A program made the translations under genes and the position numbers. This document shows, one piece after another, positions 19,611-64,000 of a DNA stretch of 64,000 nucleotides. The notes under the pieces are model-generated. The model was not told the DNA's origin. It saw only the letters and a list, made by a program, of their open reading frames with translations, and did no database searches. Source of the stretch: Trichosphaerium sp. ATCC 40318 (lineage: Eukaryota > Protista > Tubulinea); the NCBI GenBank assembly GCA_038496445.1, contig JALMLS010000455.1:372001-436000 (forward strand), given 5' to 3'. Within the stretch, counting starts at the first letter, position 1, and each line of letters opens with the position of its first letter.

Positions 19611-22600
19611 TTATTTAATTACTATCAAAGAGCGTTTTGTACATATTCTCCTCTTTGTGGCAATAGAATAGATGAGTTTAGGGTATCACTTTCAACACCT
19701 GGTGTCATTAGCTTTACTTTACCTGAGAACACTTGTTAGAACAATTGTGAAGACAAAGGTAAAAAAAAGTGTGCTTACCTAATACTGGTGCATCTTTGCT
19801 TGGAGGTATTAATGATAGTGGCTCTACAGTGGTATCTATAGAACATACGATATCAGGTCGTATTTTCCTAATTGTAGCAACAAGTGTCTCTAAATCACCT
19901 TTCCACCAATACGGAACAAGAACTAAAGAAACACCTATAATTCATAAGAACAAAAAAATCACCAATCTTCTCAACAAATTGCAAATAACTCCTCACAAAA
20001 ATACTGTATTGTACTTTAAAAAGCGTGCAGTTTGTGAGGTCAACATTAGGTGAAACCTGGTTTGCTGTAACTGTGAACAAGACAGTACAAAAACAAAGCC
20101 AACTAGCACTTTTTTTTTCCAAAAAACGGGCACGTGCCTATATCTTCGCAGACTTGGCGTTTTTCTATATCCAACACTTCTCTTTGAGTTACATGAGGCC
20201 CTTCAGGAAATATTTTATCTTGATAGTGCTGCTCTCCTTGGTACTCAAGAGCCAAACTTTTATCAGGAACAAAAACATCTACAGTAAGAAGTACTCCAGA
20301 ATTGTATCTTGTGCCAATATAATGTTCTTCTCGTACTTCCGAATCTGGAAGAGCTTGTTTAACTCTATTAATAAGAGTCCTACGAATATGAGCGTTTACA
20401 ACAAAATGAGTCAATTCACTGAAAAAAGAGACAAAAACAAAAAAGACGAAAGGAGCACTTCCCCGTGCACAAGATATTATATTTAAGTGTTGGCGTAATA
20501 AATACGATAATCATAGTTATGGGGAAAGCAGTTGAACATAGCGAAACTAATCACATGGGTTTTGATGAACTCAGGCGTACATTTGTTTTGACTTTTTAGA
20601 ATGATTTTTAAACTTCTGCCATTGCCAGTTGTATGAATCATCCAAAGATGTCAAACATCTAGGATAATAAGGCATTATACCTGAACCACCTAGATTAGCA
20701 ATCTGTGTTGTGGACAGCCGATACCTAAAGAACAAAAAGTTACTATTAAAACACAAGGTATAACTATTGACTGCGAAACGAGCATGCCACTTACCATCCT
20801 TCGGCATTTGTGATATTTAAAGCTTTCTGTACATGTCTGAGAAACGATATTTGTTTGTCTGGGTGCAACCAAGCGCCTTTAGGAGCAGCAGGACTAATAA
20901 CAGTAAATCCAAAAAACCCGAAAACGAAAAGCAAAAATAAAAACTCACGTAAAATCCCAATTGTGCTTGTCGTATACGTCCATTAGAGCATTGTTAAGTG
21001 AGTATTTATATGCTGATAATAGAGGATGTATATTATATTTATATAAATCACGTTCTCTGATTGTTAACCAATCATCAAGTATTTTTAGTTCTAACTTTTC
21101 AGCAATAGAATCTAACTTTTTTCTTTCAAGTAATATTCTACCATCCCATGTATTATTAGGTGCATTCCTAAGTATTCATAAGAATCCAATAGCATACTAT
21201 AGTACGTAATTTATTGGCGTAACATGAAGAAAGTACGGGTAAAAAGCTATAAATGGAAGAAAAAACGAAAAAAAAACAATGTTAGTCCATGACCAACAGT
21301 CATTCTGTCTGGCTCTTGGAGTGCAAAAATTAATAAAATAGGTTACCTGGACCAATTATATTCTGGAAAAATAGACTTAAGGGCTCTAGAAATCGATCCA
21401 CGATAGCTATTCAAGAAGAGTTATAATCCTAATGAAAATATTTTTATCTACTTACATTTGTAGTATATTTTGAGCACCGCATACTTCCAAGTCTGCTGGT
21501 AGTACATTATACCAATCATCATAAGTACTTAAAGAAAGAATCTCAGACACATATTCTAGTTTATATCTCTGGTTGTCTATTTTATTCCAAAACGTGAAAG
21601 GAAGCCATCTAGACACACGTGTTATCACAGCTTTTTTTTTGGTGGTCTGACGTACTTAAATCGCCATTGTTTCCATTCATAGTTAGGATAGATATCCTTG
21701 ATTGCTGTACTTATAGAAGCATATCTTTGGATACCGTTATTACAAAGAGAAATTAAATATAGAAGTGACCTACTTATTTACAACTTGGGCTCCAATTTTA
21801 CCAAGCTCTTCTGTTGAGATATCATACAAACCTTCAAGGTCAGTAATTCCAAGGTCTTCGCTTATATCCTCCAAGTATCCTCTACACCTTTCTTTATCAT
21901 CCCAGTGCCCCATTGGTGCACATCTAAACGAAGCATATTGTGATCAACAATAGAACCAAAAGGAAATGAAGTTTAACAGTGTTTTAAAGAAATGCAATCA
22001 ACAAGCCTTCTTAGCTCAGCGGTAGAGCGAACGGTTCTTGTCCGTTTGGCCATGGGTTCAATCCCCATAGGAGGCTGTAAATGCTTTTGACGCCTACATT
22101 CATTGTACGCAAACTAAAATTCATACATTTGCACACTTTGAATTTCAAAGAAAAGCATAGAATCGACGTGAAACGTACTTGAAGTTCAATACTTGCCAGT
22201 CATGATTAGGATATAAAGTTTTCATCATATTATAAACAGATCCTGAGTATCTAAGGATAATTTTAGAACCACAGAGACAGAGTATGATCAAGCAAATGAG
22301 ACGAATTTTCGCTTTAAATTCGATCATTGAAAATAACAATTTTTTGACCTGTTAGTCTTTACGGATAAACGTACACGTTCATTACTCTGACAGCATTGTA
22401 TTCTTTCATGTCACGCGAAGTGACAGCATACCAATCATCTAGATGTTTAAAGTTTATTTCCTCGCTTATTTGCTCCAATCTTTCTTTCTGGTTACGCTCA
22501 TTACTCCAGTGACCTCTAGGAGTGCGTTGTATGCGCCTTTTGCTGTCACCTATAGAATTAGTAAATCAAACGCGCCTTATATTCCTAAAACGGTCTTTGC

Positions 22601-22675
22601 TAGGGATATCTAGGCGTATCCGCTACCTTTTTTGTGGTTTTCTCTGTTTCTCACCAGGCGCCGTGTATGCGCCAT
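19611..22675 (-). CDS. Trp/Tyr-rich helical-repeat protein with C-terminal PD-(D/E)xK-like (RAP/Vsr-type) endonuclease domain
   Basis: Five repeats starting PRGHW, PMGHW, PFTFW, PNNTW and PKGAW, each with D(D)WY...Y.GS...AL..(L/I)YP...W. Then LTVDVFVPDKSLALEYQGEQHY...DIEKRQVC..IGVSLVLVPYWW...LVATIRKIRPD. One junction near 21170-21345 is unresolved and the start is tentative. Confidence 0.8.
22005..22076 (+). tRNA. tRNA with CTT anticodon (Lys-like), atypical anticodon loop; intronic and antisense to the host gene
   Basis: 72-nt cloverleaf: acceptor GCCTTCT/AGGAGGC, D stem GCTC/GAGC, anticodon stem AACGG/CCGTT, T arm ATGGG-TTCAATC-CCCAT. Intact A and B boxes, TTTT at about 22085. Confidence 0.85.
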
Positions 22676-23460
22676 TCTACGGCCTTAAAACCGGGTATGT
22701 ATCATGCTACAATGCTTTATTACACAAACCAGTCAACCTTTATCAACAAAAACTAACACGGTGAAACCCTTTCACATCACAGTTTCCTATAATTCCAATT
22801 GAGAGACAACAAAACTACCAATTACAGCGACTTTGCAACAGGCAAAAACCAACTCAGTTGACCCCTAAGCGATTCTTCTATAAATCGTGTCATTCCAACT
22901 ATGTTGCAATACTGCAACTAGTTAGATGAGTTGTTGTAAATCATTAATAGCTGACAAACAAAAAATAGGTTACAGTCTCTGAGAGACTTCATATCAACTA
23001 GGTAGCTCTTTATTTTGTATTGTTATTGTTTCTTACAGCAAGACAAACAACTGTATGATGCCCAAAGTTATAGATTGGTACCTAATTCTAGCTCTGTTGT
23101 GAACTTTGTACTTGGCTTGCGCCTCGAAACTTTGTGATTCTTAATTTAGTCTGATAGGTGGTACACTCCAGTATCGATTGTTACCACTTTACTGCGCGTT
23201 GTGGGTCTGTTGAAACATTGACTTGAAGACATAATGGTCTGTTAAACATTTGATAGCGAGCGAAACTTCGAGAGTTAATTGCAATCAGTGAAGACTGCAT
23301 AAAGTATTTAGCACTTGCAAAGATCGAGCGATGCTGTTGAGTCTTAAACAGGCATGAAGGCTGTTGAGAGAAGATTTGTTGTCTCAGTGTTAAGCAAACT
23401 CTAAACGTTGAGTTTAAGCTTTGTTACCTTTTAACTTCGTACACCACTCGCAAGCAAACC

Positions 23461-24587
23461 ATGGATGCGTTAAAGCCTTATTTAGTGCATTTCGAGCCAG
23501 TCGTTGCGTTTATTACAACCAACGCTACAATAGTGTCTAGAATAAGCGCGGTAGGCGCCACTATTGTATATTGCAGCGTTTCTATGTACTTATCAGCTCG
23601 AAAATTACGGAAGGCTCTTACAGACAAGGAAAAGTTCGCCAAGAGCATCAATATAGCGAAATACACTGGTACGCGTAATTACAGAGCGAAAACTTCAAAA
23701 AAAGCAAGTTGAACTTCACGTTCTAATAAACAGTTAGTTCCTACTCATAGTGCCGTTCTTGGTAAGATGCCATGGATATTCAAAGCTTTTATTGGTTATA
23801 TTACTTTCAGGCCAACCCTGTGGCGCAGTATCCAAAAAAACAACTTTTTTGTTTGTTATTACAACTTCTGTTGTTGGAATGATTGTTCTCTTTAACGTCT
23901 CTTATATCTTCTTGTTCACTACATGGTTGGAGAAAAAGCAGAGTGGTGAGTATAATAAAGTTCTATTTGTTCAACATTGACGCACGTGACAGGTGGAACG
24001 AAATGGATGACAAAGTCATTCTTGGTGCTTTGCCATTTTCGAGAAATGTGAAGCAACTTCACGATCAAGGTACCTCCAACGAAGTAGCTTTGCCACACTA
24101 ATATTTTAATACAAAGGTGTTGTTGGTGTAATTAACACATGTGGCGAATATGGCGGTCCTGTGGATGAATACAAGAAGCTTGGCATAACTCAAATTATGC
24201 TTCCAACGCCTGACTTTACATCACCAACACTTGAACAGATTGATAAGGGCATAGCATTTATTAGAAGACATGCAGTAGATGGCAAGAAAGTTTATGGTAG
24301 GAAGGAATTGAACCTTGTCTTTTGCTGCACACCACAAACGTGGCAGAACCAGCAAAAGAAAAGTAATAATGAGCTATAAATAGTAACGTTGTTTTTTTTT
24401 AGTGCACTGTAAAGCAGGTAAAGGTAGAAGTGCGACAGTTGTTATATGTTACCTAATGGCTCAGTACAATATGACTCCACAAGAAGCACAGATGCATATG
24501 ATTAGAAGAAGACCACAAGTTTGTAAGTATCTTTGGGATAGAAAAGAAGTTGTATCTTATCAAAAAAAGATAACAAATTACTCTTAA
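23461..24587 (+). CDS. PTPMT1: PTPMT1-like dual-specificity (phosphatidylglycerophosphate) phosphatase with N-terminal TM extension
   Basis: TFRPTLWRNLL, WWNEMDDKVILGALPF, GVINTCGEY, LPTPDFTSPT, and P-loop VYVHCKAGKGRSA. Confidence 0.88.
23828..23905 (+). other. U12-type (minor) intron with GT-AT termini in the PTPMT1-like gene
   Basis: Donor GTATCCA, branch TCTTTAAC 9 nt before the end, in-frame stop if retained, no AG inside. The AT end restores TLWR-N-LL. Confidence 0.72.
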
Positions 24588-24979
24588 TAGCTGAAATAAA
24601 ACATAGTTTCTACCCATTTAACACATGTACATTTACTTCACAAGCATATCAGTTGCTATAGTATAATGATACAAGAGCAGCAATAGCGTACAAAGTCGTC
24701 CCTACTTTAACTCAGGTCTGATACTTTTTATTTTGTTCTTAGCTAAAGGACTTGCTCTATTTTTTTTAATTCGGTAGTGCAAGTCGTACCAAGCAGTAAC
24801 CAAAAACCCAGTAATTGTAAGGAACGCGAAAGCGTCCATTATCTACTAATTGATAGAACAATATTCATAGCTTCGCAGTTTGGGGTCCACAAGACGAGGT
24901 AACAGTCAACCTTGGTCCATAAGAATTCGCTAGTTTGTTTTTTTTATTTGTAGCAAGAGTATTTCTACATACTGGGCTA

Positions 24980-27900
24980 ATGGAGATTGTTTATGAAGCA
25001 GATACGAGAGATTATGATAAAGCTCTTGAAGCGTTAGATGAGATGAAGGAAATATCCGCTTTAATGAATCAACACCTTACTACACAGAACGCAAGCCTTG
25101 AGATAGTACAAACAAATATTGAACACGCTTTTGATCAAATAGACGTTGGTCTTGAGACTCTAGTGGAAGCAAGGCATTTAGATGCTCGTAGTAATGTTGC
25201 TACAGGTACTTTGATTGGTACTGGCGTTGGTAAGTAAAATACAAAACCAATAAACTTCATTCTAATTTGGACTTAAAAAGGCGCTGTTGCTGGAGGTGAG
25301 ACTTGAGAAGGCGTAAAACCGCTTGTATTTATGAGAATGATTATTTAGGTATCGGTGGAACTGTAGCAGCACCCGGTTTAGGCACTGCGATAGGTATTGG
25401 CGTTGGAGTAGCTGCAGGAGCAGCAGTTGGGGTACTTTAGCTTTTTTTAGTTTTTTTTAAAATTGATCACGTGTTTATTTTATTTGTAATCAGGCGGGAG
25501 TTGGTGTTGTAACGAAGGTATGTGAGGTTTATTCCATAACAACGAAAAGTTAAAATGTCACAGGCAGCTAAGAACCACAGAACTGATAAAATCCAAAAAA
25601 AGTATCATAAAAAGAGAGATCAATATAATACTGCTTCGCCTGTTGGTAGATCGCTTGGACAAAAGAAAAGGCCACGTAAATAATTGAAATAATAATCTTA
25701 GCTTGTCACGTGAGGTTTTGACATTGCATCTAGAAAGCTACAGCGGAGTACCACCTCAGAGTAATAGAACGCCGATAATTTCCAAGGATGCGGTATGCCA
25801 TACTTTCATGTTTGTATCATTGTGTTTTTATGTCATTATGTCATGCGCTTATTGTCTTTCTAGAGGGTAAAACAACTCAGTGTTAAAAGAGACGAGAAAT
25901 ATGAGTATTTTTGGGGCATGTTTCCTGTACTAAGAAACAAAGAAAAGGTGGTAAAGAGTACGTTATCTTTTTCTTTCAAACTATTTTCAAAGAAAAGCTG
26001 CTAAAACAGTTACCTCTTTCGTTGTGTAGTGACACTTATTTAAAATACCTAGATTATATATGCTCTATGGGGTCATCTGTTGGTGGCAAGCTCTTCGTAA
26101 CACCGAATTACTTGTGCTACACAAGAAGAGAACTTGTTATCCCGTTCTCAAAAATAAGTAATATCACAATGAAAAAACTTGGTCCTTGTTACAACCGTAT
26201 ATTGGTTAAAACATCTGTTCCTTTTGGTACGTAATAGCGGTTCTATTATTTTATAATTTCACGTGATATTTTATCCAACTCACGTGTTCTGAAGGTACTG
26301 AAAACAGAAAGTTAATAAAGTTTTGGGGTTTTGCTTTTCATGCATTGGAGGCATATTACTTAATTAGATATTTATGGTTAAACGCTCCAGTAAATATTGT
26401 TGATCCTGAAAAAGCAAGAAAGGCTCTTGTGGAGAAGCACAAAGCTCAGTTAGCCGTTACAAATGAATATGATATTCCGCAAAATCAAAAACAAACAGAC
26501 ACATTTGATGATGTTCCTGAAGGCTTTTTTGATAAAGCAACGACTATTATTGCAGAAATAGAAGATATAGGAGCAGCAAACCTTGAACTGATAGCAGAAG
26601 CGGACGGTACAACCAAAAAAGAAGCTTAAATCAAAACCCTTTTTTCTCTTTTTCAACTCGTTCATTCTTCGTTGTTTGCTGCTCCTTACTCGTTTATATA
26701 GAAACGATTTCAGCATCTAAGAAAAGGGAAGCTCTCCTTTCTTCCGGTCTAGGAGCAAGTGATAAGCTTCTAGGCAAATATTTTGGTAACCTTTGGAAAA
26801 AAAAGCGAAAAGGAACAAAAACACGTGAATGGGATAAAGAGATAACTCTTGACATCGAAATTCTGAGAAAAAATCAAAGAGATGCATGTACGCCATAGTC
26901 ATAAATAACTCGTTATTTGACCTACTACTATCATAATAATAACTTGGTATTGCAGTCAAGGAATGCTTGTTAGTGCTTGGAGAACAAAAGTTTTGGTGTA
27001 TTGATCCAATAACTTTTGATCTCTTAGACAAGAAGCATTGTGAATTTGCTTATTGCAATATTGAATCTATAATAGCAAAAGTAAGACCTCTTCATATTGA
27101 TGTAACGTACGCTTCTCGAAAACCAATTTTTGAATGGTTTTTTGAAGACTTCTTGGTGTTTGTTTACTGATTATTTGTAGATTTACGTCATTCTGTGGAG
27201 AAAAGACTCTAAGTTTCATGTCAGCCTATAGTCAAATTGTTATAAATGCATTAGTGATTCACTCTGAATTATGGCAACATGCACCAAAAGTTATTTTCGA
27301 ACCAGGAATCAAACCATTTGCTTACGGTACTCACAAAGTTTTAACATTTTTTTTTCAACAGAAGAAAAAAAATATAAATCTACAAATAAGACGAAAGCTG
27401 GCTTGACTGACCATCTTTTTAGGTTATGCTTCAATATCAAATAAAATATCTAATTCACGTGACCCATCAAGCGATGGTATCATAATAGGTGACGATGATG
27501 ATTCAATACCACAAATACAAACAGAAAAAAAAAAAGAAGTCAAAGACGGATTCGACCTTATTGAAAACGGACTAGTACGCATACTTTATTTTCCTCAACT
27601 AAATCAAACATACTGCTACCTGTGTGATAAACATACTTGTTATCAAAACTATGCAGTCTAGTCGAATAGCTTTATGCTAGACGCACTTAAAACTACTCTA
27701 AAAAAGCGGTGGAATTTCCATGTGTTTTTTCACGTGCCACAACAAAAAAACATAGAAGCGTATTTGATACATATATAACTGTGTTTAATCTTACATATGT
27801 TTTTAGGATAGAATTCAAGGTATCGCTCATAAGGTTAGTGGAAAATATAAGTATGGAAGTTTGTTGTTTATTTTTTAATAATAGGAGGGAAGAGCTCTTG

Positions 27901-27998
27901 ATGACCAAACAAAACAGCTTCAAGAACTTTACGAAAATATAGATAATGATGTTGTAAAAATGAAGAAACTAACAAATAAGATGCAAAAAAAGATGTGA
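24980..27998 (+). CDS. Multi-domain SNARE: STX17-like Qa SNARE + Gly-rich membrane hairpin + GRAM/PH + Qb-like + PH-like + Qc SNARE
   Basis: LNQHLTTQNASLEIVQTNIEHA-type Qa helix, G/A-rich hairpin GTLIGTGVGAVAGGIGG..PGLG, GRAM YICSMG..GGKLFVTPNYLCY...VIPFSKI, and C-terminal GLDRIQGIAHKEGRALDDQ...MKK. Joining into one gene depends on the intron at about 25646-25732. Confidence 0.68.
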
Positions 27999-28511
27999 AT
28001 ATTGTAGCTAATAAAAGTTTTTTTTGTGATGAGCTGTGTATGACTGATTGTTGCAAATCATCATACTCCAATATCTAGAGGAAGGATAAAACATAGCATC
28101 TACACCAGTTAGTTTATGCTAATTTCAATTTTTGATTTTATACCATTGGCAGCGTACTTTTCACAGTCACGTGTTTTAGAAAATTACCATTCTGTTAACA
28201 GTAATTTAAACACAAACAGCCATAGATCCTAATCAGTGAAGGCTATTTGGTCTAATCCTGTTACAATAATGCCTCAACAGTAGGCCCTCTAATTTAGGTT
28301 AAGCGCACTCAGAACGTGCCTTTAAATAACATGGCGCTTATTTATTTTCGTGGAACAGTAAACCCGCCGTCTCGCTTGATTACTAAGTTTAACCTCATTA
28401 CCTGTTACAGTAAAAAAAAGGCTACCTGTAACACAGTGTTTCAATAAACACTCACTTTGACCAATTACAGAAATTAGTTTTTGCGCGGAAACAAGGATAT
28501 AACCATAAGTG

Positions 28512-28836
28512 ATGGGACATGGTACGTTGATTTGACCAACATACAGCTTTGGTTTAACGTAAACGTGATTAACTTCGCTCAGCTACAAATACGAACAAGC
28601 CAACACAGCAGAGATTGTATGAACAAGCTCCACTGAATGCTACAATTGTTGAACAGAAGGCTCAAATTGCTGAACTGGAAGCTCAAAATGCTGAAAAGGC
28701 CGCTCAAATTGCTAAACAAGACTCTAGAATTGCTGAAATGAAGGCTCAAATTGATAAACAGGCTGCTCAAATTGCTGAACTGGAAGCTCAAATTGCTAAA
28801 CTGGCCGCTGAAAATACTGAACAGCACGTAGTTTGA
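28512..28836 (+). CDS. Small heptad-repeat coiled-coil protein (one intron)
   Basis: ATG at 28512, intron 28522-28582, then repeated 21-nt gctcaaattgct units encoding AQIAELE heptads. Confidence 0.55.
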
Positions 28837-29443
28837 TGGGTGTTTATATAAGGTGTACCTTAATTGTTTATTCATTCCAGCTTATCCATAAATAAAATCC
28901 TCAAAGTACTGAAAGATTAGTTTTTGGTGTAGTGTTGTAGGCCTGGATAAGGCCAGTGAGTTGAAAGGCCAAGATCAGCAGTACATCTCGAATGACTTTG
29001 CCATCAATATATGCTCCTCAGGATCTTCTACAAGAACTGTGTTGTTACTAAATACCCACTTTGAAAACAGCTTCTTTGAATACTGTAGTTTTGTCAAATC
29101 CTTCCTAGTCCTGGTATAAAAAAAATCAATGTTCAAGTTGCGCTATCTGTGGGTATGTCTACGTGCTCTTCATGCAAGTTGTAAGATCAAGAGCTCTTCG
29201 ATCTGACTAAACTCGAAAACCAAAAGTCTCAAACAGCAAAAAGTTGTGCAAACTTGAATGATGCATAAAATACTGTGTTGCTAATTGTGCCTTCTCTGGC
29301 ACTTACAATTACATGTACAGTTGTACAAAAACGCCTGGAAAATATTTTCGAATCGTATTGCAGTATTTATTTGACAATAACGAAGTCGACTTTAACAGAC
29401 AATAAAATAGAAAGCCAGTAAAAACGAAAAAAAGTGTTGAGCT

Positions 29444-30770
29444 TTATTGAAATGACATTTCCAGTCCTGCACCGGTTTGTTCATATACAGTTGTGGAACC
29501 ATATTCTCCTTTCCTTCCAGTAACAGTGTTCACAAGGAACATGACGCCATCTTTAACATAGCCAGGTAAGTTTGTCCAAAAATAATAGTTTGGGAGCAAG
29601 TGGTGTTTGTCACTCCATGGTCGCTTCCTGCAAGTACAAGATTATAATTTACCATCAAAAATGTTTACTGAGAAACGCACACTTTGAATTTGTTCCACAT
29701 AACGCCAGCGACAATGTAAATGACAACAACTATGAACAATGAAATGAGGAGCATTGTGCCAATGCCAACACTGGATCTACCGCCGTTACCTGAACGTGGG
29801 CAAGCGTTTTTGGATCGCACAGTTATCTACTCTTATGTTAAGTTCAAAAAACCGAATCCCTGGTGTACAATAGCGTTGAAAAGGTCACTATTATCAACTT
29901 CTGAGTTCTCAAACCCTAGAATATTTGTCAGTAAAATAATATTACCACACTTTATACCTGAGAATTCTGGATCACAAATAAGTATCAAGGTAGTTCTAAT
30001 GCTACTATAAGGCTCTTTTTAAAAGGCGTAAGAATAATTGTAAAAAGGGTACAACAGAACAGACTTACCGACAAATTCTATCTCAACACCTGAGTCTCCA
30101 GCTGCGTTACTGTAGGATAAAAATGTGGTTCGGTCCGAGGTGTACATGCCGTCGCAATTTGTAAACTCTCTTATGTGCCATAGACCCTGCACCGCAGAAC
30201 ATACGCCACATTGTTCGTCTTCTTTTACAAAACTGTGAGTGTCACGCTATTTAATGGAGTTTTAGTACGTACCGACATGACCACAAGTTTGGCCGTGGTC
30301 ACCACAAACAAACCAGCGATAATGGAAACCGGCCTGTGGAAAACCTATTTTTTCTTGTACACCCAAGGCCTTGTAGATGTCATAAATAACAATTGATAAA
30401 CATGCTGTTTGCGTACAGTAAGGCCAGAGAGATCATAGATAGTGCCATCGACTATCAAGTAAGTAAAAGAGAAAACGGAAGTTTTGAAATCTGGAAGTGT
30501 GATGGAAGTCTTTTTTCTCTCCCACCGTCAAATTATAGGTATCCTTCTCTTTGGTATTTGTTGATGGCATGGAGAGAAAACGACTTCCATCCCCATTTCC
30601 CCATTTATCATAAATACTATCGTACCATCTAAGTTGCTACAATCAGGTGGAAATGCCAAAGAGACAGTAACACAGAGCGCAAGGAAAGTTGTTAACGTTG
30701 TTCTCGCTATACAAATACGTAAGATATTTCTTACCTCTCCACAACGTAATTATAACCACAACGTACCCAT
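29444..30770 (-). CDS. MRH-domain (M6PR/ATG27-like) type I membrane protein
   Basis: Signal peptide, DGTIYDLSGL, Cys-rich ectodomain ending SKNACP, TM GIGTMLLISLFIVVVIYIVAGVMWN, tail LPNYYFWTNLPGYVKDGVMF. Confidence 0.78.
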
Positions 30771-43548: not shown

Positions 43549-48766
<5,218 letters not shown>

Positions 48767-52000: not shown

Positions 52001-55000
52001 GCTATATCAAGACGTTTTGCTATGTTTTCTTGGCTTGCACTTGTAGTTTATACTCAGTTTGTTGTGAGCACTGTTTATGTTTGGCAGTTTACTTGGACGA
52101 CTAGTCTTGGAAATAAATATCCTGATCTAGTTATGCGTATAGGTACGTTAGAAGGACTAGAAGATTATTTAGATGCGAAATAAGTATCAAGGATTGTAAC
52201 ATTGCTTAGGTCTTCAACGTTTCGAAGATACAAGAATTTGGAATGGCATGATCAAAGATCTTATTATTTTCATATTTGCTATTCTTCAATGGCGTGTTAA
52301 TAAGTGGACAGAGTCAAAGTCATCAGGTAAGCATAGTGCTGTTACTATTAAAATATAATTTAAGCTCATACTTAAAATAGAGGTACAGAATGCTGAAGCC
52401 AAGTTACCGAGCTGGATGAGACTGGTACGTACTCAGTTGAATAGTTATGGGGTTTTTTAACAGTTGTTATCAAGGTGGTAACATTTGTTGCTGGTGTATG
52501 GGAATATCTTGGGCTTGTTGCATGTTATGTTGCACTTTGGTGTGTTGCCATTATAGGAACACAAAGTGTTGTTGGATTATTGTACGTTGGTCGTATTACT
52601 TCTGTTCTTGTTTTGTTTCGTCTGCTCTGGCATGTTGCTTATTCTATGCTTTCCGTAGTTACCTTGCGTTCTTATTCACTTGCTTGTGCGTTCATATGAC
52701 AACGTTAGACTCTGTTAAGCATTTGAAACGCTACTGGTTGTTCATTGTTTTCTTCAGTGGTATAATTTTGATCGGTACGTATTTCTGAACCAAAATCGGT
52801 TTATTTATCGTGTCTTATAGGCCGTTATGTCTATCAATTTCCAGTTGTTGCAAGCAAGATATCGGACTTCTACGGAAAGAATAAACGTATCCATACACTA
52901 CACCTTCTTTTTTTTTGTGCTTTTTATTCATTGAACATTTTGTTTTTCTCTTTAACTCATAAACAGCAATTACTCTTGAAGAGATTGGATTAGTTCTGTA
53001 CAGTACGGATAAAACTGATCGAGAAACGGCTCCTCTATTTGTGGGGTTAATTGGCAATACTCTTATATTTGTATTGACTGTCGTTCAATTCACCCTCATG
53101 GTCAACAGCGGCAAGGTGAAACCAATTACAAAAAAACCCCAAGTACTTTTTCCTAATCTCTATTAGGAGCGCGCAGCTGCTCTACGCATGCTTAAAACTA
53201 CACCGATGCTTATGCAAGTCATAGCATTTTTCAGAAGGCTTATGGTCCTTCATATGCCTAAAGTGGCCACTATTGTACAAACATACATGTTTATGGTTAT
53301 TTGGTTTCTCATTTTTTCTGTCTTAGGTTTTGCTTGTCATTGCGTTACAGTACCTCAAAGTATTACACTTTGCATTCATATTTATAGTATTGGTGTGTGT
53401 TCCGTTCCGTTATGCATCTGACCATATTGGTATACCTATCTTAGTGTACACATGGGTATGAACTCAAATTTCTTGCTGTAAGCTTTACAACTTATCATCT
53501 TTTTTTTTTTGATAGGTTCTCATCTTTGCACAACTTACTTATCAATTCTCTGGATTTGACAAAGTAAGCGCTATCCAAAAAGCATTGTTGTTTTGGTTGG
53601 GTATATTGAAAGAAAAGAACAGGTACGAGATTCTTGCATGAAAATGCGTCAAACACTCTTCAAATGGGTTTTTTTCGGTTTTCTCGGTTGTTTTTTTAAT
53701 CATTCCTTGTTTTCCTTGCTCTGACTGTTTGAACTTAAAGGTGGAAGCTTGTAAGCCCTTATTTGTATATTACGATAGTACTTATACTACAACGATTGGC
53801 TTATTTTTGGAAACGTGATGATAGAAAGCAACAGTCACTTAAGAAAGATGTTCTTGCTTTTGATAAATATACAAATGACCTTAAATTATTCGTATACCCA
53901 CGTACCTATGCAGAGTCTAAACACAAGCTTCTTGATAGTGTAAAATGGTATATTTCAAATGCATTCACCCTTCATGGATGGGAGGTACGTAGCTTAAATT
54001 GTACCAGAGCAGTATTGTTTACTGACGACTTGTTAGTTGTGGTGCTTATGTTTAGTCATTGGAATTCTGGTTCGTTATGATATCATGGGTCTGATCTTTG
54101 CTATTGTTCTTGGTATTTACTCTGTTGTATGCACTACAAGGTATCAAGGAAGAACAATTACATGAAAACAAATACCATTTTCTTTGAAGAGGTTTTTTCC
54201 TTAATTTTTGTTTTAGGCCTAAACGAACTTGGGGAATGAGACTTTTACTTGTTGTAATGTCTTTCTCTATGATGTTTCAGTATGTATTCGATAGAGCGTT
54301 CCGGTTACCACCTGTCATACCAGGAGGTGCGATAAACTAAAGCTATATCATTCTGACCTTTGTTAAAATAGATAACACAATACGAGTATGGGATTATCCT
54401 CCAGATCGATGGAATTCCACTTGTAGGTGGGGAGACCCTGCAGCTTATTTGTTACTTGATGTAGCTCCTCCACAGTTTATGATATGTACGTTCAACCCGA
54501 CGAACATCTATTTCGTTGATTTTCGTTTTTTGACCCGAACGATTAAGCTCTATTGTCTTACTTATGTTAAGGTGACTATCTCATTATATTCCTTGGATCT
54601 ACTTTAGTCTATAATTCTACAATGGAAAATACTACAAAGTTACAACAAAGTGACTATTACTATCAGATATTCGTTGATGCGTCTGATCTCCGTAAATACA
54701 AACTTGACAAAAAAAAAGATATACCAATGTACGTTCCTTAACTCTAAGGGAAAAAACTATTTTTCAGGATTTTGACTATGAGGACATACACATGTTCTCA
54801 TTTAGTAGAATAGCATTATTGTTAACTAATTTCGGGTTTTTTATTCAGGGCTTGGATGAAGTCTCTCAGATTTTTGTTTTATCGATTTTCAGTTTACTGG
54901 ATATTGATTTTTGTATTCATCGTTGGTACAATTCAAGCAGATGTACTCTCCTTGGGATATCTCATATTCTCTCTGTATTTCCTAAACAGGCATGAGAGGC

Positions 55001-58000
55001 TTTTCAGAGAGAGAAATCTGAGGTGGAGATGGTTTAGATTGTATAACTTTATAGTTATCTTTGTTCGCGTCTTTTATCAATTTCCTTGTGTTCCTGTACG
55101 CAATGCACTTGGTTTTTTATTCCCTTGTTAACTCAAGAATTTTATGTTAGGCTGCAAATGAAGGCGATATTGATTGGTATGAAGTTCTCGGACTTACAAA
55201 AGTCTACAGAGTTGGTAATGAGAGAGGAAGTATTGCTGATCGTATAATCGCCTTTGATTTGATTATATTCATTCTTTTGGCTTTCCAAAGACGCGTACGT
55301 TGTTATATGACTAATTCAACGTCTTATACAATACACCAAAACCACAGCTGTGTAGTGTTCGATGTGCACGTGCTTATTTCTGTTCATAGTTGTTTAAAAA
55401 AGCAGAATGGGAAATTGTACTCAAAGACATGCGTATACAGCATGAGACAGCTGCTTCTATGGCTCGATTACGTTATAATGAATATCAACAACGTAAACAT
55501 GAAAGAAAGGAAGAAGTGAGACTTTTTAAGGCACAACGTAAACAGCAACTCGAACTCCGTAAGTACACGTTTTTGTAAAAAAACCACTCAAACATATCGC
55601 ACTCACTTGCGATCTCTTACACTCTTTTTTTGGAATAGTCCGTAAAGGTAGAGAGAAGATGCGTAACCTCTTCTTGACTCCAAGAATGGATAGAGAATCA
55701 GAAGATGATGATAGTCACATGGCTAAGCTGAAAAAGATGCGTCGCCTTTCACGTATTGGTTCTTCCTTGGGTACACTCAAAGATATACAGAAGCTTCACA
55801 ATGAGGGGTACACTAAAGCGTAGATTCTATGTTAATATTAACGCCATATAGGGCTCTGAAAGACTCTGGTATTGCTGACGATCTTGGTACCAGCTCTTTG
55901 CTTCGTACACCTTCTGCAGAAAGGAAAAAGAAAGTTCAATTTGCTCTTGACTTGTCTGATGTACAGGAAGAGGAAGATAAACCAAAAGAGAAGGATAAAG
56001 ATGAAGTAGAGCCCAAGAAGGAAGTTAAAAGCATAGTTAAAAAACCCGTAAAAGTCGATTCTGACGATGATAGTGGTGAGTTTGTTATCGAAATAACTTT
56101 TTTTTTTCTATGATTCTTTACTGAATTGGTTACACTAGACTTTGAAGAAAAGGACACAGCTGAATCTACAGACAGTGCTAAAGATATAATCGATGAGGAT
56201 GCAGACTCCGGTTCTAGTAGCACTGATCCAGAAGACTTCAGACTTAGCGAGTACGCTCTTCCCTGTTTATTTTTCTATTTTCTTATTTATTCCCTTCTGT
56301 TAACACGTGCTAGTATGAGCTCGTTTTTTGGTACATTGTTCATGACTGAGGATGACGAAGACGAAGAACAATCAAAACAGGATAAAAAGAAGCAGTACGT
56401 GTCGTGGCTAACTTTAAGCTGTTGTAAACTAATAGTGAATCCAAGAAAAAACAGAAGCAAATTACGAAAAAAATGCTTTTCTTTCATTGGTAGACAAACA
56501 GATAAAGTCATAGCGTTCTTTAAGCCTCACTCAATCCTCAAGATTGATAGTACGTACTTAAAAATAATCACCCTTGCTAACTCACATGCCCAAAACCAGG
56601 TTCACATCCACGATGGGTTCAATTATGGCGCTCTTTGTATGGTGCATTCACGCATCACTCACAGTTCATCGTTTACTTGACATTCATTCTTGCTGCATTA
56701 TTTAATGCTAACTTACTTGCTCTTGTATATCCTATAACATTATTTGGATACGCCATGCTGGAGAGACCTAGACCACCGAAAGTACGCTGTTGTTTCTCAT
56801 GGTTTTACTTCAAACCAAAACAAAATGCTATGATATTTTTTCTTCTCGTACTTTTCCTTTGTTGAGACTATGGGTGATGAAGTGGGTATTTTATTTCTCA
56901 CTACAAAATAATGTTTTGGCTTTTTTGTACTTTCTTTAACCAAACTGGTTGCTTATCTTATTTTTTTCTTCTTTAGATGTATTGGAAGTTGATTAACTAC
57001 TATGTTTGCTTTGTGTTGTGTGTCAAATTTATGTTTCAAATATCCTTCTTCTGTGTATGCCACAGCGCTACTTCAGTCACCTGGTCCACATACCCACATT
57101 GTAATGATGCTGCTACTTGTCGAACACGTATGTCAAAACTCTTTCTTTTCTAATTTCTGTTTTTCCAGCTTTGTTTCTTCTCCTGTTTATGACTTATGAA
57201 TACAATCATGTTGTTCATAACACGAGCTTATTTACCAAAAATTAATAACCCCTAGAACCGCTTGATGGTGATTACAAACCTGATTATCCAACATGGGTTG
57301 GTCTTGTAAAGAATGGATCTAAATCCTATATTATTAGGTACAAAAACAACTGCTATGTCCCACTACTGTTCCTTCTTCAACATGTTCTTTGTCATTTCGT
57401 ACTAACTCATTCCTTCAAGTGCATTTTGGGATGTTGCTGTATTGGTTGCAGTTTCTTTTCATAGATATTGGCTTGAAAAACAAGTGAGTGCTTTTGATTC
57501 CTTATTTCTCTCATTTTTTTTGATTGTTGTTGTTTATCCTTACGTACTTTAAAGGGTTTATGGGATGTCGTGTCTATGCACAGTGGCGAAAATCCAGACG
57601 CTGAAATAAGAAAGACAGAAGCCCGTGAAGCTAAAAAAGCAAAACAACTTCGTGAACAAGAAAAAAGAATACGACATGAACAACTATCTGGATCAGGAGA
57701 TGAAGGAGGTAAACCCTAATATTTTTATACTTGTCTTGTCCACTAGCTGGTCTCTTTGTTTCACGCCTCGTTACTATTCAAAGCATATTAGGTCTATAAT
57801 CAATACTCATGTGATCTTTTAGGTGACTTTTTCCATGATGACACAGACTCCGAGTATAATCCTTCTGATGACCCAGAAGATGTTGAAGATGATACAATAC
57901 TTCCTAGTGATGGTCTACAAGACCAAACCGAAGAAGAAGAAGAGGATAAAGATAAGCGTGAGAGCTTACTTATTGAGGATATTGATCCTCAATCTGAACC

Positions 58001-61000
58001 TGAAGAGAAAGATTCTTTGCTTGGTGACGATGATGTTACTGAAAAGACTGAGCTTTTGTCTCCACGGAAAAAGAAATATATACCTCCTCCTGAAACGAAT
58101 GTATTAAGAAAGCGACGCCACACTGTTACTTCAGGGCTTGATAGTCCTAAAGCAAGTCACTCAAGAAAAAGACGTACACTTGATGATGAAACAGAAGATG
58201 AAGATAATATTGCAATGACTGACAGTCGTGCGTTCCGTGATGATCGTGGTGATAGTGATGATGAAGAAGTGTACGCTGATGTCACTAATGTATTAATTAA
58301 TCTGAATGTTAGATTTACTCCTTGGGACTTTATAATGTTGAGCTTCGCTACAATGAAGCGATACTACAAAAGTACGTAACAAATTTTTTTTCATCCTGCC
58401 ATTAAACCTCTTTCTAGGCTTGCTTGATGAAGACCAAACTGGTACAGACCTTTATGTACCTTTATTTGTATTGGGTACGTGGTATATGGAACGAATTTAT
58501 TGGACCTGTCTCAGCCCTTTGGGCACTACAGGGCTGACAGTAAAACTCAGGGAGAAAAAACAAAGTCTAACTTTTTTTTTTTAGATCTTATATCATTCCT
58601 TGTTCTTCTATTTTATCCATCGGAATTTATTGGTGTTGATAATAATATAGCAACAGTACGCTTTATAATTTTAATAGCATTTATTGTCGTGATAAATGTT
58701 GTCTTGAAGCTAATTTTTTGTTTCTAGTATCTAGATCAAAATAGACTTCCTCTAGCCTTTGTTATGCTTCTTCTAGCTCAATTCTGTTTGATTTGTGTTG
58801 AACGTATAATCTTCCTTTTCCAAAGCGTAATATCTAAGCTATTACTCCAATACACGTTGTTGGTACGCATACAGTAGTTTTTCTAATCCACGTTTGAATT
58901 TGCTTTTTCTAACTCCTATCTCCGACAGGTGTTGTATCACTTCTTGTTGTGGTTCTATGTACCTACTACTAATAACAAGAATTACAATGAATTAAACTGG
59001 ATACAAGTCTTTTACTTTCTGAAGCTTATTTACTTCGTTGTATCAGGCCTACAAATCGCTTATGGGTAACCGGAATCACTAGTAATGTTTTCATTGAACT
59101 AATTTTTTGTTTTAAGATACCCTGCTCAAGGATCTTTGAGATTCATCACAAGTGCTCCAAATCCACTTTATATAAATTGGGGCGCATATCAAGTATACAG
59201 GTATAAAATTAAAAATTAGCTTGACAGTGTGGGAACGAATGTTTGAACATGTTCCTTGTTTTTTCTTATCTGATTTTTTTTTGTGCTGATGCTTTATCTC
59301 CCATAGAGCTATTCCTTTCTTGTTCGAACTACGTACACTCCTTGACTGGGCTGTAACACGAACTACACTAACATTTTATGAGTGGCTCAAACTAGAAGGT
59401 ACGTAATGAGAAGAACTAAATCCTAAACTTTTGTTGTACTCAACTTTTTGTTACTTCCTTAGATATTTATAACTACCTCTTCTTGACAAAGTGTCGTATT
59501 TGCCAAGAAAGAGCATTTGAGAGGTACATATTAGATGAATATTTCTCGATTAATGTGTTAATCCCTCGTAGAAAAGAAGGAGATATACAACCTCTCATAC
59601 TTAAACTTGTTATGGGATTTGGTTTATTCATTCTTTTGGTGTTTATCATTTGGCTTCCTCTCTTTGTTTTCATGCAAGGTAGTTTGTCAAATAAGCCAAA
59701 CCCAGTCACTTCTGTACGTATTAGAATACTTTACATCTTTTTAAATCCGAAACACTTCTTCTTGGTTACTAAACAAGTCAAAGTGTTATTACTTTCCTCA
59801 TTTGCCCTGTTGGTAAAAGTTTTTTGTGGATTACCTAAAGCCCTGAGGCTGGTTTTTTAAGCCTGCTTCTTCCATTTACAGTGTTAAGTTTTCTGTATAC
59901 TCCTTCATAATCAAACTAGCTTGTTTTGTTTTACTTCTCTGTCAGGTTTTTTTTTTTGATATTTGCGTTTTTGATAGGTTGATATCACTATGGGTATAGA
60001 TGGATATGATGCATTCTATACTGTTCGTGCAATGAGTGGAATAACAGGAGTAGAGAAGACAATATTTGACAAAATTGTCGGTGCTTACTCGGCTTCTCGG
60101 TTAATAGGTATGCCGCTGTAATCCAAATATTATCTACAACAACAAAGTTTAATGTGTCAAAAAATCCACCTCACAAAAACAACAAAAAAAGCTCGCGTAC
60201 CATTCCTTTGATACCCCAACACTGTTGGAAGCTGTTAAATCACCTCTTGGGGGTTTTGGGCGCCCTTTTGGTTGATTATTTACTAACTTTTTTTTTGCTT
60301 TTTAGGTAAAGGAGACCGGCAGGATACGCAGCAAGTTACGCTAGGGTCGGATAGTCAGCTGTTATGGCTGATATCCCCACCATCTTTGCAGCAATTCAAG
60401 ACAGCTCTAAAAGGACCTACTGCCCTACGTTTGTTCTACTCTGTAACGTTCACAAGGCAAAATCCACCTGAGGTATGTAACTATCTCTCAGAATATTTTA
60501 TTGTCCCACGTGATAGTTGTGGTGAAATGAACATCTAACTGATCTTCTACAAGATGTTGGAAATTAGCACATTTAGAACTTTGGCAAACATCACTGATGA
60601 AGATCGTGCCTCGCTTCTGAGTGTTCTAGAAGATCCAGAAAAAAACGAGTTTACAGCAAATGCTTTCTTTCCACGTGCTTTCTTAGTACCTGTTACAGGA
60701 GAAATACGGTATGTTGACACAAAAAGTAAACAGCAAATCAAAAAACCCAAAAAGTTGGAAAGTAATAGAGCCGGTCTATGAGCACTCTGTTGACTTTTGT
60801 TTGATCAGTTTTTTTTTGTGCTTATTTTTTTTTGTTTTAGGCTTTCTTCACCTACAAACGTTTTTCCTGTCAACTTCAACCTTATCCAAGATATTACATC
60901 TTTCAATGTATCTCAAGGACCTGGTAAACCTCCTAGAACAGTTGAACAGTATACTGTGTACTGGAAAATCTCACAAAACATAACAAGTGATGATCCGCTT

Positions 61001-61662
61001 GCACGTAAGTGTTCCTTTTGTTGCAACTTTACCTCCTTTTCTTACTTTTTTCTTTGTTTAGAAGATTCAAAAGTTAAGTTTGTTGTTGTATCTGTTGAAG
61101 TGCCTACATTCGGTCAACTAAGTTTTCTAGCTACTGGTGGTATTGTCAGTTTGTGTATCCTTTCACAACGAATTTTTTTTTTGATTTTTTTTTTTACTAC
61201 CAAACGGCTCGTTGTTTGCCTTGACTACTCTTTCAAGACACTATTTTCGTCCTAGCTGTTGGTCGTTTACTACGTACTGGTGTAACAGATATGTCACTTA
61301 GGATTGTATTCGAGGATATGCCTGAGGTAGACGAGATTATGGCTTACTGTGAGGTACATACTTTTTTTTTTCTGAAGAATTCTATTGAAAACGATTTTAC
61401 CTCTCACTATTGTTGACATTCCTTCTCTTTCATCTTTTACAGTTGTTGTTTGTATTTGATAAAATGAGGTCTTGGCTCACGTGTTTTTTTTTCCTTTTAG
61501 GATATCTTCCTTGCACGCCAAGATGGTGACTTTGTTCTTGAAGAACAACTATTCAGAGAACTAATAGAACTTTACCGCTCTCCTGAGCTTATTATTTCAA
61601 GAACAGTACTTCAAAAACCAAAGTTTGGGGTACCTAAAGATAAGAAAACAAAAGAGGAGTAA
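49072..61662 (+). CDS. PIEZO: Piezo mechanosensitive channel, many exons
   Basis: Very long multi-TM gene with N-terminal LLIAALIR..SYIYL, LVYPITLFGYAMLERPRP, SGLQIAYGYP, AIPFLFELRTLLDW..T.TTL..YEWLKLEDI, cap region, GIVSLYTIFVLAVGRLLR and IVFEDMP...DIFLARQDGDFVLEEQLFRELIELYRSPE. Confidence 0.95.
52887..52966 (+). other. U12-type GT-AG intron in Piezo
   Basis: Donor GTATCCA, branch TCTTTAAC 10 nt before CAG. Removal restores the frame NK-P-ITLEEIG. Confidence 0.72.
61155..61237 (+). other. U12-type GT-AG intron in Piezo inner helix
   Basis: Donor GTATCCTT, branch CCTTGAC 12 nt before AAG. Removal restores GIVSL-Y-TIFVLAVGR. Confidence 0.85.
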
Positions 61663-62099
61663 AGAAGAGACTATAAGAAATAAGCTGTAAACAAAAGAAA
61701 AAAAGAACAAAAAAAATTTCAAACAATAAACAATGTAATTAAAGCAACCGTTGTCCTTGTCTTCGCCTCAATACCATAATATCTTTAATTGCACTAAAAC
61801 ACGCACGTGTAGAGCAGACGGAGCATAGTTTTCTTCCGATTAAAAGATGAGTAAACGTACAACTCAGTTCTGAGCAGTCTGGGAATGAAGCTGAGCAAAT
61901 AATACTATTATTCCCGGTAGTCATACGTCAACTTTGTGTTGATATGAGATTTAAATGCGTGTTGTTTTAACAGTAGTCACGAACTACTACCACTCAAGGG
62001 TTTCAAGTACTACTGGCTTATTACACTGAAAATGTTTATGTAGTATTACCGCATATTCGTGTCATTCAAGTATTTACATAGGGTTTTTGTACTAAGATA

Positions 62100-64000
62100 T
62101 CACGCAGCGCCAAGAAGTAAAGGTAATCTAGGTTTCCCGTTTTCTGTAATTTCTTGACATTTGAAACGAATTTTTGATCCGATTTCAGGTCGTGAGGGTA
62201 GTGTTACACCTCTACTAATTACAAAATCTACATTCTCACTTGTTTTACATAATAAACATCCTAACAAAACATCAACAAACTTCAGACCAGGCTTTTTTTT
62301 TGAAGAACAATTTTCTGACAAAAAAATCTGAAATGTATGGCATAAAAAACACTTACCAACATGATTTGTAGTTGTTCCATATCCAGTAACTGTAGCAATA
62401 CTTTCAATAAATATTTTTACCTTAAGAAGTTTATGTGTACGACCAGTAGCGTATCTATAAAGATAATTAAAAAATGAGTCAGTATTCAAAAAAAAGATTT
62501 AAAGAAAGCAAACATTTTGAAATCATTCACTCTCACACCTTCTCTTCTTCCCCACACCCTTTAAAATATCGGTTTTGAAATAAAATACAATGTGTGGTAA
62601 TACACAAGTATACAACAAAGGAAATACAAGGAAGGAAAGGGAAGTGAATGATAAAGAAGAAAAAAAGAGGAAAAAGTTACGAACAGTGTTCTTGGTTTGC
62701 TCAGCATTAAACCTTCTCCTCCTTTCTTTTCTATTTCTTTCAGCATTACTCTAACATGATCATTATCTTCTGCTTTTTTATGGTCTACCATTGTAATATG
62801 TGAGTCACATGGCTCTAAAACTTGTTTAAGATATTTCATCCTGTGTTCGAATAGTAGATCCGCTTTTGGGCAATCAAACACTTTGTATTCGATACAAGAC
62901 CAAAGATCGGCTAAAAAATAGTGAATACACAGTGTCAAACGATCAAAAAAGTTGTTATTTTTCTTGTAAGTGAAAGGCACAAGTCACAGCAAAAACTTTT
63001 GTTGAAAAGATAGTTGTGTGCAAAGAAAGTGCGCTTTCAGGTTGTTTAAACTTTCTCAAATCGCTTGCCTTTCACTACAAAGTAAAGGACGCATTTTACA
63101 AAGAAAAACCGTGAGGTGGCTGCAAATGGAAAATAAACTGTTTGAAACAAACGAATAAAAAACAAGATTTGATTATAACTTACAGCGTCTATTCATAACG
63201 ATGTTAGACGTTGAGTAGAACTTTCCTGGTCCACCATATAGCTCTCCATCAAGGTGATCATTTGGTAGAGTCTCAGTAAACCAATCAGGAGAAGAAAGTT
63301 TTTTACCACAACGTGATACAAGCGACCTTACAGATTAAAAAATAAGAAAAAAAATAAACTAGATCCTTTGTGACGCTTACTTTCCATCCCAATAAGCCCT
63401 GACGCCATCATATTTTTCAGAAACCCACCAACCAGTTACATCTTTAACACCATCCCACTATGTCGAAGTAAGTAATGACAACAAGAGGAGAGAAAGTATT
63501 ATATGCTTACTACTTTAGCCAACATTAACTCCGGTGCATCTGATGATCGAGTATTCTCAGGTGATATAGTTGACCAGTCTTCGAATGGATATAAGTTAGC
63601 TAATGCTCTGTAGAGAGAGTGATTATATCTAAGATCATTATTGAGAGATAGGAGGTATAGAACAGGAGAAAGAAGAAAAAAAAGAAAAAAAGAAGAAAAA
63701 AAGAGAAATTTGTTTTTATTTTTTCTCAAAAGAAACACACGCGTACTGCCTAAAAAATGCGCTGCCAACATCTTCAATATCTTCAGGTAGAATATTTTTA
63801 AAATCAGAGAGAGTTTTGACTTCCAAAAAACGAGCTATGGTTGATCCTAGATACTGTTTTTGGTTGTCTAGATCGTCCCAATACCCTCTCGGTACCTTAT
63901 CAAATGATTATGTTGATATATAAGATAAACTTCGCGCATACCTGACTAGAAAATCATAAATACGTGAAATCTTGTAAAAATTAACGTAATTTCGCAAAAA
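62100..64000 (-). CDS. Helical-repeat protein with C-terminal minimal ATP-dependent polynucleotide ligase (5' end outside the window)
   Basis: Repeat VPRGYWDDLDNQKQYL...YNHSLYRALANLYPFEDW, then LMLAKW..DVTGWWVSEKYDGVRAYWDG (motif I), LDGELY (III), YKVFD (IIIa), GGEGLML (IV), LLKVK (V) and an OB fold ending GKPRLP. Confidence 0.9.

Follow-up and report, generated by a model that had tools for sequence, protein, structure and literature searches.

Repeated modules ahead of a C-terminal nuclease domain of the Vsr fold are known from two groups of proteins. The RAP/FASTK and OPR-RAP (NCL) proteins join an organellar-type leader to helical repeats, hairpins of 35-40 amino acids (aa) in RAP/FASTK, and to a Vsr-like domain; they have undergone lineage-specific expansion and have turned the nuclease fold to mitochondrial RNA (PMC8190603, PMC12242768). 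The EDxHD homing endonucleases, such as I-Bth0305I, are encoded by intron or intein open reading frames (ORFs) and carry N-terminal modules of the NUMOD type ahead of a Vsr-fold nuclease. A third relevant group is Lig E (PRK09125), a class of nick-sealing DNA ligases (PMC6144786), whose few eukaryotic members are mainly fungal, have no known function and fall near a leaderless Myxococcales branch (PMC8455567). Here we describe two genes on the minus strand of a 64,000-nucleotide stretch of Trichosphaerium sp. ATCC 40318 DNA (GenBank assembly GCA_038496445.1, contig JALMLS010000455.1, positions 372,001 to 436,000), hereafter the window. Gene 1 encodes five copies of a tandem repeat followed by a Vsr-like nuclease, and gene 2 encodes the same repeat followed by a Lig E-type ligase. 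Their family has the design of repeats plus Vsr-fold nuclease seen in the RAP and EDxHD proteins, yet fails the defining tests for both, and it is apparently undescribed so far, no description having been found within our incomplete coverage of the literature. As a tentative first choice among several explanations, we favour a duplex-DNA-binding array from mobile elements that is imported into mitochondria and carries nicking and sealing enzymes.

A 75-residue helical repeat shared by the two genes

Database queries were made with single window exons or natural homologues, and joined spliced models were used in local analyses only. When a hidden Markov model (HMM) is built solely from the repeats of gene 1, the repeat of gene 2 obtains 47.4 bits and the best of 2000 shuffles 11.5 bits; everything else in the 64-kb window stays at or below 6.6 bits, and no third repeat gene is found there. 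BLASTP pairs a gene 1 exon with a gene 2 exon at an E-value of 4e-7, and against a 109-sequence profile of the repeat the gene 2 exon and exon 8 of gene 1 reach probabilities of 97.0% and 97.8%, respectively. The homology of the repeats in the two genes, which the initial annotation of this locus had set as a test of its own proposal, is thus borne out. That annotation was also right in describing a tandem repeat, but its period of 65-70 aa needs correction: the gene 1 repeats are spaced by 75, 73, 71 and 74 aa, the range in the window being 71-75 aa, and the family median is 75 aa.

About 900 units yield a 75-column consensus in which W5, D29-W30-Y31, G43, P63, W67 and F72 are highly conserved. 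PPR, OPR, HPR and TPR Pfam models do not match 109 two-repeat segments or the window exons, which together with the period places the repeat outside PPR, OPR and HPR, as originally proposed. Sequence searches of the PDB found no match to the repeat either, and Pfam likewise gives it no name. AlphaFold models were made of a homologue, P0007, and not of the window proteins. The two-repeat model is all helical, with a pLDDT of 96 and a pTM of 0.80, and adjacent units are therefore predicted to pack in a defined way; the unit, at 75 aa and roughly five helices, is predicted to stack into an ordered array and in this differs from the RAP/FASTK hairpin. Foldseek comparison of this model with the PDB gave a best E-value of 0.6 and TM-scores of 0.31 or less, with no solenoid among the matches. 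SAM, helix-turn-helix and annexin identities were rejected (E-values of 0.6 or more in Foldseek, and only faint SAM-like Pfam scores), and a known protein-interaction fold, the finding that the initial annotation had named as speaking against it, was looked for in the PDB without a fold match.

A distant named relative was nevertheless found. The DUF4046 family (PF13255) aligns with the repeat profile at an hhalign probability of 96% and an E-value of 1.4e-9, the match spanning the Y-x-x-S...YP...W-x-F...P-x-x-FW core, and tblastn reaches many DUF4046-annotated genes at E-values of about 1e-6. The Pfam cut-off of DUF4046 is not reached by the window exons or the two-repeat segments, with one faint match in the homologue P0105. 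On these comparisons the repeat is a distant relative of DUF4046, so that the epithet "uncharacterised" given to it earlier holds for its fold, which is unmatched in the PDB, while the sequence is partly named. The DUF4046 proteins of Bacillus plasmids have homologous repeat units in common with the present family, but the one tested has no nuclease domain, and a literature search found no publication on DUF4046. On a plasmid of Bacillus thuringiensis, one DUF4046 gene (L169:4788-6680) has cry genes and transposases around it.

Hypervariable columns had been proposed as a mark of sequence-reading repeats. Variability is indeed seen, but it extends over about ten exposed columns scattered over helices 3-5 (columns 35, 36, 39, 45, 48, 56 and 59 among others), and a two-residue recognition code was rejected. 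The strongest covarying column pairs look structural, and conserved acidic columns outnumber conserved basic ones. The net charge per repeat is about +0.8 overall, with a eukaryotic median of +0.8; of the six repeats in the window, five range from 0 to -5, and the arrays of two mobile-element or viral proteins reach +6.

The nuclease domain

Gene 1 splices into a single continuous frame of 561 aa, in which the repeats precede a D...EYQGEQHY domain. A P0007 model with three repeats and the C-terminal domain (pLDDT 88) finds the catalytic domain of I-Bth0305I (PDB identifier 3r3p) as its best domain-level Foldseek match, with a target TM-score of 0.65, and Vsr (PDB identifier 1vsr) at 0.53, none of the PDB matches reaching an E-value of 0.001. 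Further matches include many viral Vsr, DUF559 and homing nucleases, and weak whole-chain matches, with TM-scores of only about 0.24, were obtained to Toxoplasma mitoribosome chains and FASTKD4. Exon 11 matches the phage homing-endonuclease family PHROG 9084 at an E-value of 9e-7, and a PDB sequence search with the nuclease found no match. The residues D, E, H and D are all kept in gene 1 and in 80 of 83 domains, under an HMM selection that favours conserved domains; an earlier count of E/G/H invariance was rejected as evidence, as it was built in by the selection filter. Judged by these residues, the family nuclease is very probably active, in agreement with the original description of gene 1 as ending in a nuclease domain.

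The domain differs from both of its closest described counterparts. The catalytic residues, almost invariant here, are kept in only about 50% of RAP domains (PMC8190603), and the Pfam RAP model (PF08373) touches one of 54 domains at an E-value of 0.03, short of its cut-off, and leaves the gene 1 exon unmatched. The conserved Asp, His and Asp and the Vsr fold of the EDxHD homing endonucleases are found in the present family as well, and the His lies 17 residues after the Asp, just as in I-Bth0305I (D196-H213; PMC3239194), but the second Asp follows the His by 9 residues there and by 19 here. NUMOD models of Pfam match neither the window exons nor the two-repeat segments, and gene 1 is a 13-exon spliceosomal nuclear gene in which Rfam finds no self-splicing intron. 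Since RAP domains apply this fold to RNA, the substrate cannot be read from the fold (PMC8190603, PMC12242768).

The ligase of gene 2

The repeat is joined to the ligase inside exon 2 of gene 2, with no nuclease domain between the visible repeat and the ligase, and the KYDG and later ligase motifs are present. Single exons exceed the Pfam cut-offs for PF01068 and PF14743, one exon matches PRK09125 at an E-value of 5e-15, and the PDB matches are the Lig E structures 8u6x and 4d05. The RNA ligases of editing and splicing (Rnl1/Rnl2/REL type) have an RNA-ligase profile and no OB domain in cis. The gene 2 exons match DNA-ligase families only, with an OB domain present, and leave RNA-ligase profiles unmatched; by these matches gene 2 encodes a Lig E/PRK09125-type DNA ligase and not an RNA ligase, contrary to the RNA-editing or splicing chemistry that had been suggested for it.

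In a local ligase tree, the closest sequences are leaderless Myxococcales ligases (41% identity), with which gene 2 shares the adenylation and OB_2 domains and intact motifs, and gene 2 is placed outside the leader-bearing Lig E clade (support 92/93). A signal peptide precedes the ligase in Lig E, whereas a repeat array precedes it in gene 2. The G-K-G-K-aromatic and F-basic-I-G-S-G-F-x-D motifs of the Lig E OB domain (PMC6144786) survive only as degenerate traces in gene 2 and in the fusion proteins described below. A genome scan with exon 5 of gene 2 recovered ligases and no repeat-ligase orthologue, and no repeat-plus-ligase protein lacking the nuclease occurs among the fetched relatives, so that the visible layout of gene 2 is unusual in this sample. 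The kinetoplastid ligases LIG k-alpha and k-beta, likened here by description only, are an earlier example of divergent DNA ligases that seal nicks in the mitochondria of protists, and the review that treats them describes no repeat array for them (PMC10719067).

Domain architectures across the family

Domain architectures were tallied for 165 repeat proteins. The repeat is combined with the nuclease in 84 of these, with nuclease and ligase in ten, and with nuclease and a zinc finger in two; 84 of the 96 nuclease-bearing proteins thus lack both ligase and finger. Repeat-only proteins were rejected as a true class, as 54 of the 68 end within 45 aa of the repeat and look truncated. The ten triple fusions bring repeat, nuclease and ligase into a single polypeptide, as would fit the combined system that was first suggested. 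The pairing of gene 1 with gene 2 as working partners finds no such backing: the two lie 40 kb apart and nothing connects them. Among the triple fusions, the catalytic lysine of the ligase is retained only in P0105 and in the Physarum protein P0158. At least three of the ten carry an additional finger with four invariant Cys, which occurs in relatives only and not in the window; it has no Pfam match, and its best PDB match, to the PARP1 fingers, is weak (E-value 0.02). Pfam scans of members with long tails found no RNA-specific domain. In P0033, P0142 and P0158, repeats flank the nuclease on both sides or follow the ligase, a placement that shows free shuffling of modules.

Distribution and genomic context

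A profile from five repeat-bearing exons, run against 1.84 billion proteins, retrieved 3,375 clusters at an E-value of 0.001 or less, the 150 best matches being biased toward long arrays. Among 30 proteins that were looked up, Cavostelium apophysatum accounts for 12 clusters, and Physarum polycephalum and Heterolobosea BB2 for one each; P0007, from a marine protist transcriptome, is the closest relative of gene 1 (47% identity over exon 11), and the remainder are mostly metagenomic. Amoebozoa have an expanded set of the family and Heterolobosea also carry it; on bacterial mobile elements and in giant viruses it is rare. Searches for further homologues from P0007 and P0158 gave almost no matches.

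One AT-rich contig, where P450 and RING-finger genes are neighbours, carries a tandem cluster of 13 or more intronless repeat-plus-nuclease paralogues in about 35 kb (L202:1-23861, L203:13928-21598), with 4-13 repeats each. All nuclease motifs that were read in this cluster are intact, and its repeats are under purifying selection overall, with a rough pN/pS of 0.46. One gene of the cluster bears two nuclease domains, and elsewhere a single intronless gene (L006:10001-16375) carries 25 repeats and one nuclease domain.

Prokaryotic copies are rare: three of 80 genome loci with the nuclease bear repeats. Among the bacterial copies, one follows ParA on a conjugative plasmid, another is close to Rep/ParAB on a Flammeovirga plasmid, and a third has an integrase beside it; related genes lie on giant-virus-like contigs. 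A scan of viral sequences with P0036 and a search of a phage collection found no match. A quick tree of the nuclease groups the eukaryotic repeat-bearing proteins with six bacterial repeat-bearing ones, apart from the repeat-less nucleases (SH-aLRT 90, on an unstarred branch). The gene for the bacterial protein P0124 sits on a conjugative element of about 17 kb (L002/L003) with TrwC, a coupling protein, an AbiE pair, ParA and an integrase, and the protein has an additional N-terminal phage-endonuclease-like domain and a Cys-containing, zinc-ribbon-like stretch.

N-terminal leaders

Leaders were assessed by a crude rule rather than a validated predictor, a presequence-like N-terminus having, in its first 20 aa, no more than one acidic residue, one or more Arg and a net charge of +2 or more. 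This describes 40 of 70 complete proteins; internal windows give 8.6, with 17 as the highest value among 500 draws. Arg-based cleavage-like motifs occur in 14 of the 70, where 2.2 are expected. In the tandem cluster, 10 of 11 proteins pass as against two of 13 neighbouring genes, one of which encodes the known mitochondrial protein NIPSNAP. None of the viral members that were checked passes. As regards the organellar targeting that was first considered, presequence-like leaders are enriched in the family at large, the leader of gene 1 fails the crude rule, and the N-terminus of gene 2 lies beyond the window.

Possible origin and function of the family

The explanation we favour, though we would stop short of calling it probable, is based on the fact that the partner domains all belong to DNA-acting classes and that relatives are found on mobile elements. 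The Lig E-type ligase, the phage-homing-like nuclease, the extra domain of P0124 and, weakly, the PARP1-like finger would all be consistent with such partners, as far as their sequences can be read. The explanation also draws on the lack of RNA-specific Pfam domains in the long-tailed members scanned, the grouping of eukaryotic with bacterial repeat-bearing nucleases, the excess of presequence-like leaders, and the confident model of two packed repeats. A gene of bacterial mobile elements or giant viruses, encoding repeats and a Vsr/EDxHD nuclease, is the likely source, although we infer the direction of transfer. In amoeboid eukaryotes, this gene would have acquired introns and mitochondrial-type leaders and then multiplied, and some copies would have gained a Lig E-type ligase, sometimes with a PARP-like zinc finger after it. 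The protein would be imported into mitochondria, where the array may bind duplex DNA; its selectivity would depend on how many repeats there are and on their exposed residues. The D-E-H-D nuclease would nick or cut next to the bound site, and an intact ligase, where present, would seal nicks. Gene 1, with repeats and nuclease, and gene 2, with repeat and a ligase predicted to be active, resemble the halves of the three-part protein found elsewhere. The role would lie in maintenance of mitochondrial DNA or in removal of unwanted DNA, rather than in RNA editing. That the repeat is a base-reading module, through exposed residues of helices 3-5, and the family a set of repeat-programmed mitochondrial nucleases, some of them cutting and sealing in a single chain, is a further step that we hold to be rather doubtful. 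These and the following gradings are matters of judgement.

Several observations weigh against a mitochondrial DNA-binding origin and role. The catalytic ligase lysine is lost in eight of the ten triple fusions while the nuclease is intact, and a common origin of the gene 2 ligase and the fusion ligases is neither established nor rejected in the ligase tree (p-AU 0.217, long branches). The gene 1 leader is basic and yet fails the presequence rule, and the Lys-rich leaders of the tandem cluster might instead act as nuclear signals. The charge of the eukaryotic repeats is close to neutral, and most of those in the window are neutral or acidic. The same nuclease fold is used on mitochondrial RNA by RAP/FASTK proteins (PMC8190603, PMC12242768), and the presence of twelve or more paralogues in one genome follows the pattern of organellar RNA factors. 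As regards the ligases, Lig E without its lysine retains DNA binding (PMC6144786), and dead ligase domains could therefore persist as DNA-binding modules.

The last two of these objections lead to an alternative that we regard as a serious possibility, namely that the family is an analogue of RAP/FASTK, made up of mitochondrial RNA-binding factors whose arrays would each select a site in a transcript for cleavage or processing by the Vsr-like domain, the fused ligase being a mostly decaying passenger and gene 2 a separate mitochondrial DNA ligase that retains some repeats. It is suggested by the architecture, the paralogue numbers (at least 12 Cavostelium clusters and at least 13 tandem paralogues on one contig), the ligase decay, and a report that did not detect RAP in Amoebozoa and Excavata (PMC8190603), groups in which the present family occurs. 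RAP domains have moreover been modelled on 1vsr and 3r3p, templates matched here too (PMC8190603), FASTKD5 cleaves RNA in vitro (PMC12242768), and the Foldseek matches include FASTKD4 and Toxoplasma mitoribosome chains. The low TM-scores of those whole-model matches and the single marginal hit to Pfam RAP argue the other way, as do the phage homing endonucleases as closest relatives of the nuclease and the occurrence of the repeat on intact DNA ligases, a fusion that sets the family apart from RAP/FASTK, and on bacterial plasmid proteins.

A second alternative, which we consider improbable, is that these are defence or conflict nucleases that act in the nucleus or cytoplasm, outside mitochondria, and are directed at selfish DNA, endosymbionts or giant viruses, with repeats shuffled in tandem clusters. 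The tandem cluster, with its varying repeat numbers and intact nucleases, the homologues in giant viruses and on mobile elements, and the Lys-rich leaders fit this idea; the excess of Arg-based cleavage-like motifs and the purifying selection on the cluster repeats do not, and PADLOC gave no credible match.

The system first proposed from the locus, in which sequence-reading repeats direct coupled cleavage and religation for editing, splicing or rearrangement, with genes 1 and 2 as partners, appears very unlikely to us. Physarum insertion editing is co-transcriptional, which counts against it. An editing-type system is made unlikely by the ligase, which does not belong to the right class, is missing in most members and is dead in most of the fusions; no code columns were found in the repeat. 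In its favour are the occurrence of nuclease and ligase on one array in ten proteins, two with an intact KxDG, and the origin of one of these two from Physarum, which is known for insertional mitochondrial editing (PMC4758236). Least likely of all is a purely scaffolding repeat, a protein-interaction or structural unit with the enzymes aimed by other means, to which the near-neutral charge, the excess of conserved acidic columns, the structural covariation and the faint SAM-like scores would be suited, but not the attachment of the repeat to nucleic-acid enzymes only, the strongly basic arrays of two mobile-element or viral proteins, or the lack of any Foldseek match to known interaction folds.

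Gene models and neighbouring features

The window has about 36% GC and is intron-rich, with short introns. The coordinates of the two genes and of their parts are given in Table 1. Both genes are real and rich in introns. Gene 1 is as originally annotated, except that its stop lies at 19625 and not at 19611; its introns are all GT-AG bar one GC-AG. A ligase remnant in the gene 1 tail encoded by exon 13 was considered and rejected, as an HMM gave no match.

Table 1. Features of gene 1 and gene 2, numbered from the first position of the window.
Feature	Position	Strand	Basis or remark
Gene 1 model: 13 exons, 561 aa, 5 repeats + Vsr/EDxHD-like nuclease	19625..22675	-	spliced ORF; 5' end uncertain
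Alternative first exon (candidate), presequence-like leader	23193..23300	-	would require a 516-nt intron, exceeding all others here
Exon 1: basic Arg-rich leader, 2 acidic residues in first 20	22627..22675	-	fails presequence rule
Repeat 1 (exons 2-3 + start of exon 4)	21917..22520	-	spliced model, repeat alignment
tRNA-Lys(CTT) gene, antisense within gene 1 intron 3	22004..22077	+	
Repeat 2 (exons 4-5)	21602..21916	-	spliced model, repeat alignment
Repeat 3 (exons 6-7)	21161..21601	-	spliced model, repeat alignment
Repeat 4 (entirely in exon 8)	20884..21160	-	spliced model, profile comparison
Repeat 5 (exons 9-10)	20600..20883	-	spliced model; end approximate
Exon 11: nuclease core	20138..20379	-	codons: D 20279, E of EYQG 20246, H 20228, second D 20171
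GC-AG intron between exons 11 and 12	19935-20137	-	needed to hold gene 1 frame
Exon 12: end of nuclease domain (VPYWW)	19779..19934	-	spliced model; downstream of GC-AG intron
Exon 13: short tail	19625..19722	-	spliced model
Gene 2: 7 exons, last repeat + Lig E-type ATP-dependent DNA ligase	62100..63895	-	5' part beyond window edge
Sole visible gene 2 repeat (exons 1-2)	63580..63892	-	repeat alignment, profile; end approximate
Ligase motif I exon (KYDG)	63381..63457	-	catalytic Lys codon 63415
Ligase adenylation-domain exon (KVFD, EGLML)	62685..62910	-	Pfam, PDB, PRK09125 matches
Ligase OB domain exon (Pfam DNA_ligase_OB_2)	62100..62314	-	Lig E DNA-binding motifs eroded

The array introns of gene 1 (22675-20581, minus strand) are all in phase 2 and recur at equivalent sites of the repeat, before the Y-x-x-S helix and after W-x-x-x-x-F, a pattern that suggests growth of the array through duplication of units that already contained introns. 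Intron 3, the host of the tRNA gene, is the longest intron of gene 1. By eye, a Rab-like GTPase lies directly downstream of gene 1 and a dual-specificity phosphatase directly upstream, and a Lon protease, a PP5-like phosphatase, a folylpolyglutamate synthase and a PAS-domain protein kinase were identified between 2445 and 60778. A long single-exon ORF at 16273-17814 on the minus strand combines an F-box-like segment with a leucine-rich repeat of 21 aa (63-bp period) in about 12 copies, and a coiled-coil-like tandem repeat of 7 aa (21-bp period) lies at 28640-28824 on the plus strand.

Implications

Modular nucleic-acid-reading repeat proteins, such as PPR, OPR, PUF and TALE, are to our knowledge few, and each of them opened a field. 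The present family joins a repeat with no structural counterpart, found across thousands of clusters, to an almost invariant nuclease and presequence-like leaders, in lineages reported to be without RAP. Its members are candidates for unexplained mitochondrial DNA or RNA processing in amoebae, Physarum included, and the family suggests a route from mobile-element nuclease to organellar factor that runs parallel to that of RAP. If a recognition code does exist in the array, these proteins would provide a programmable nuclease that is made of protein alone and already reaches mitochondria.

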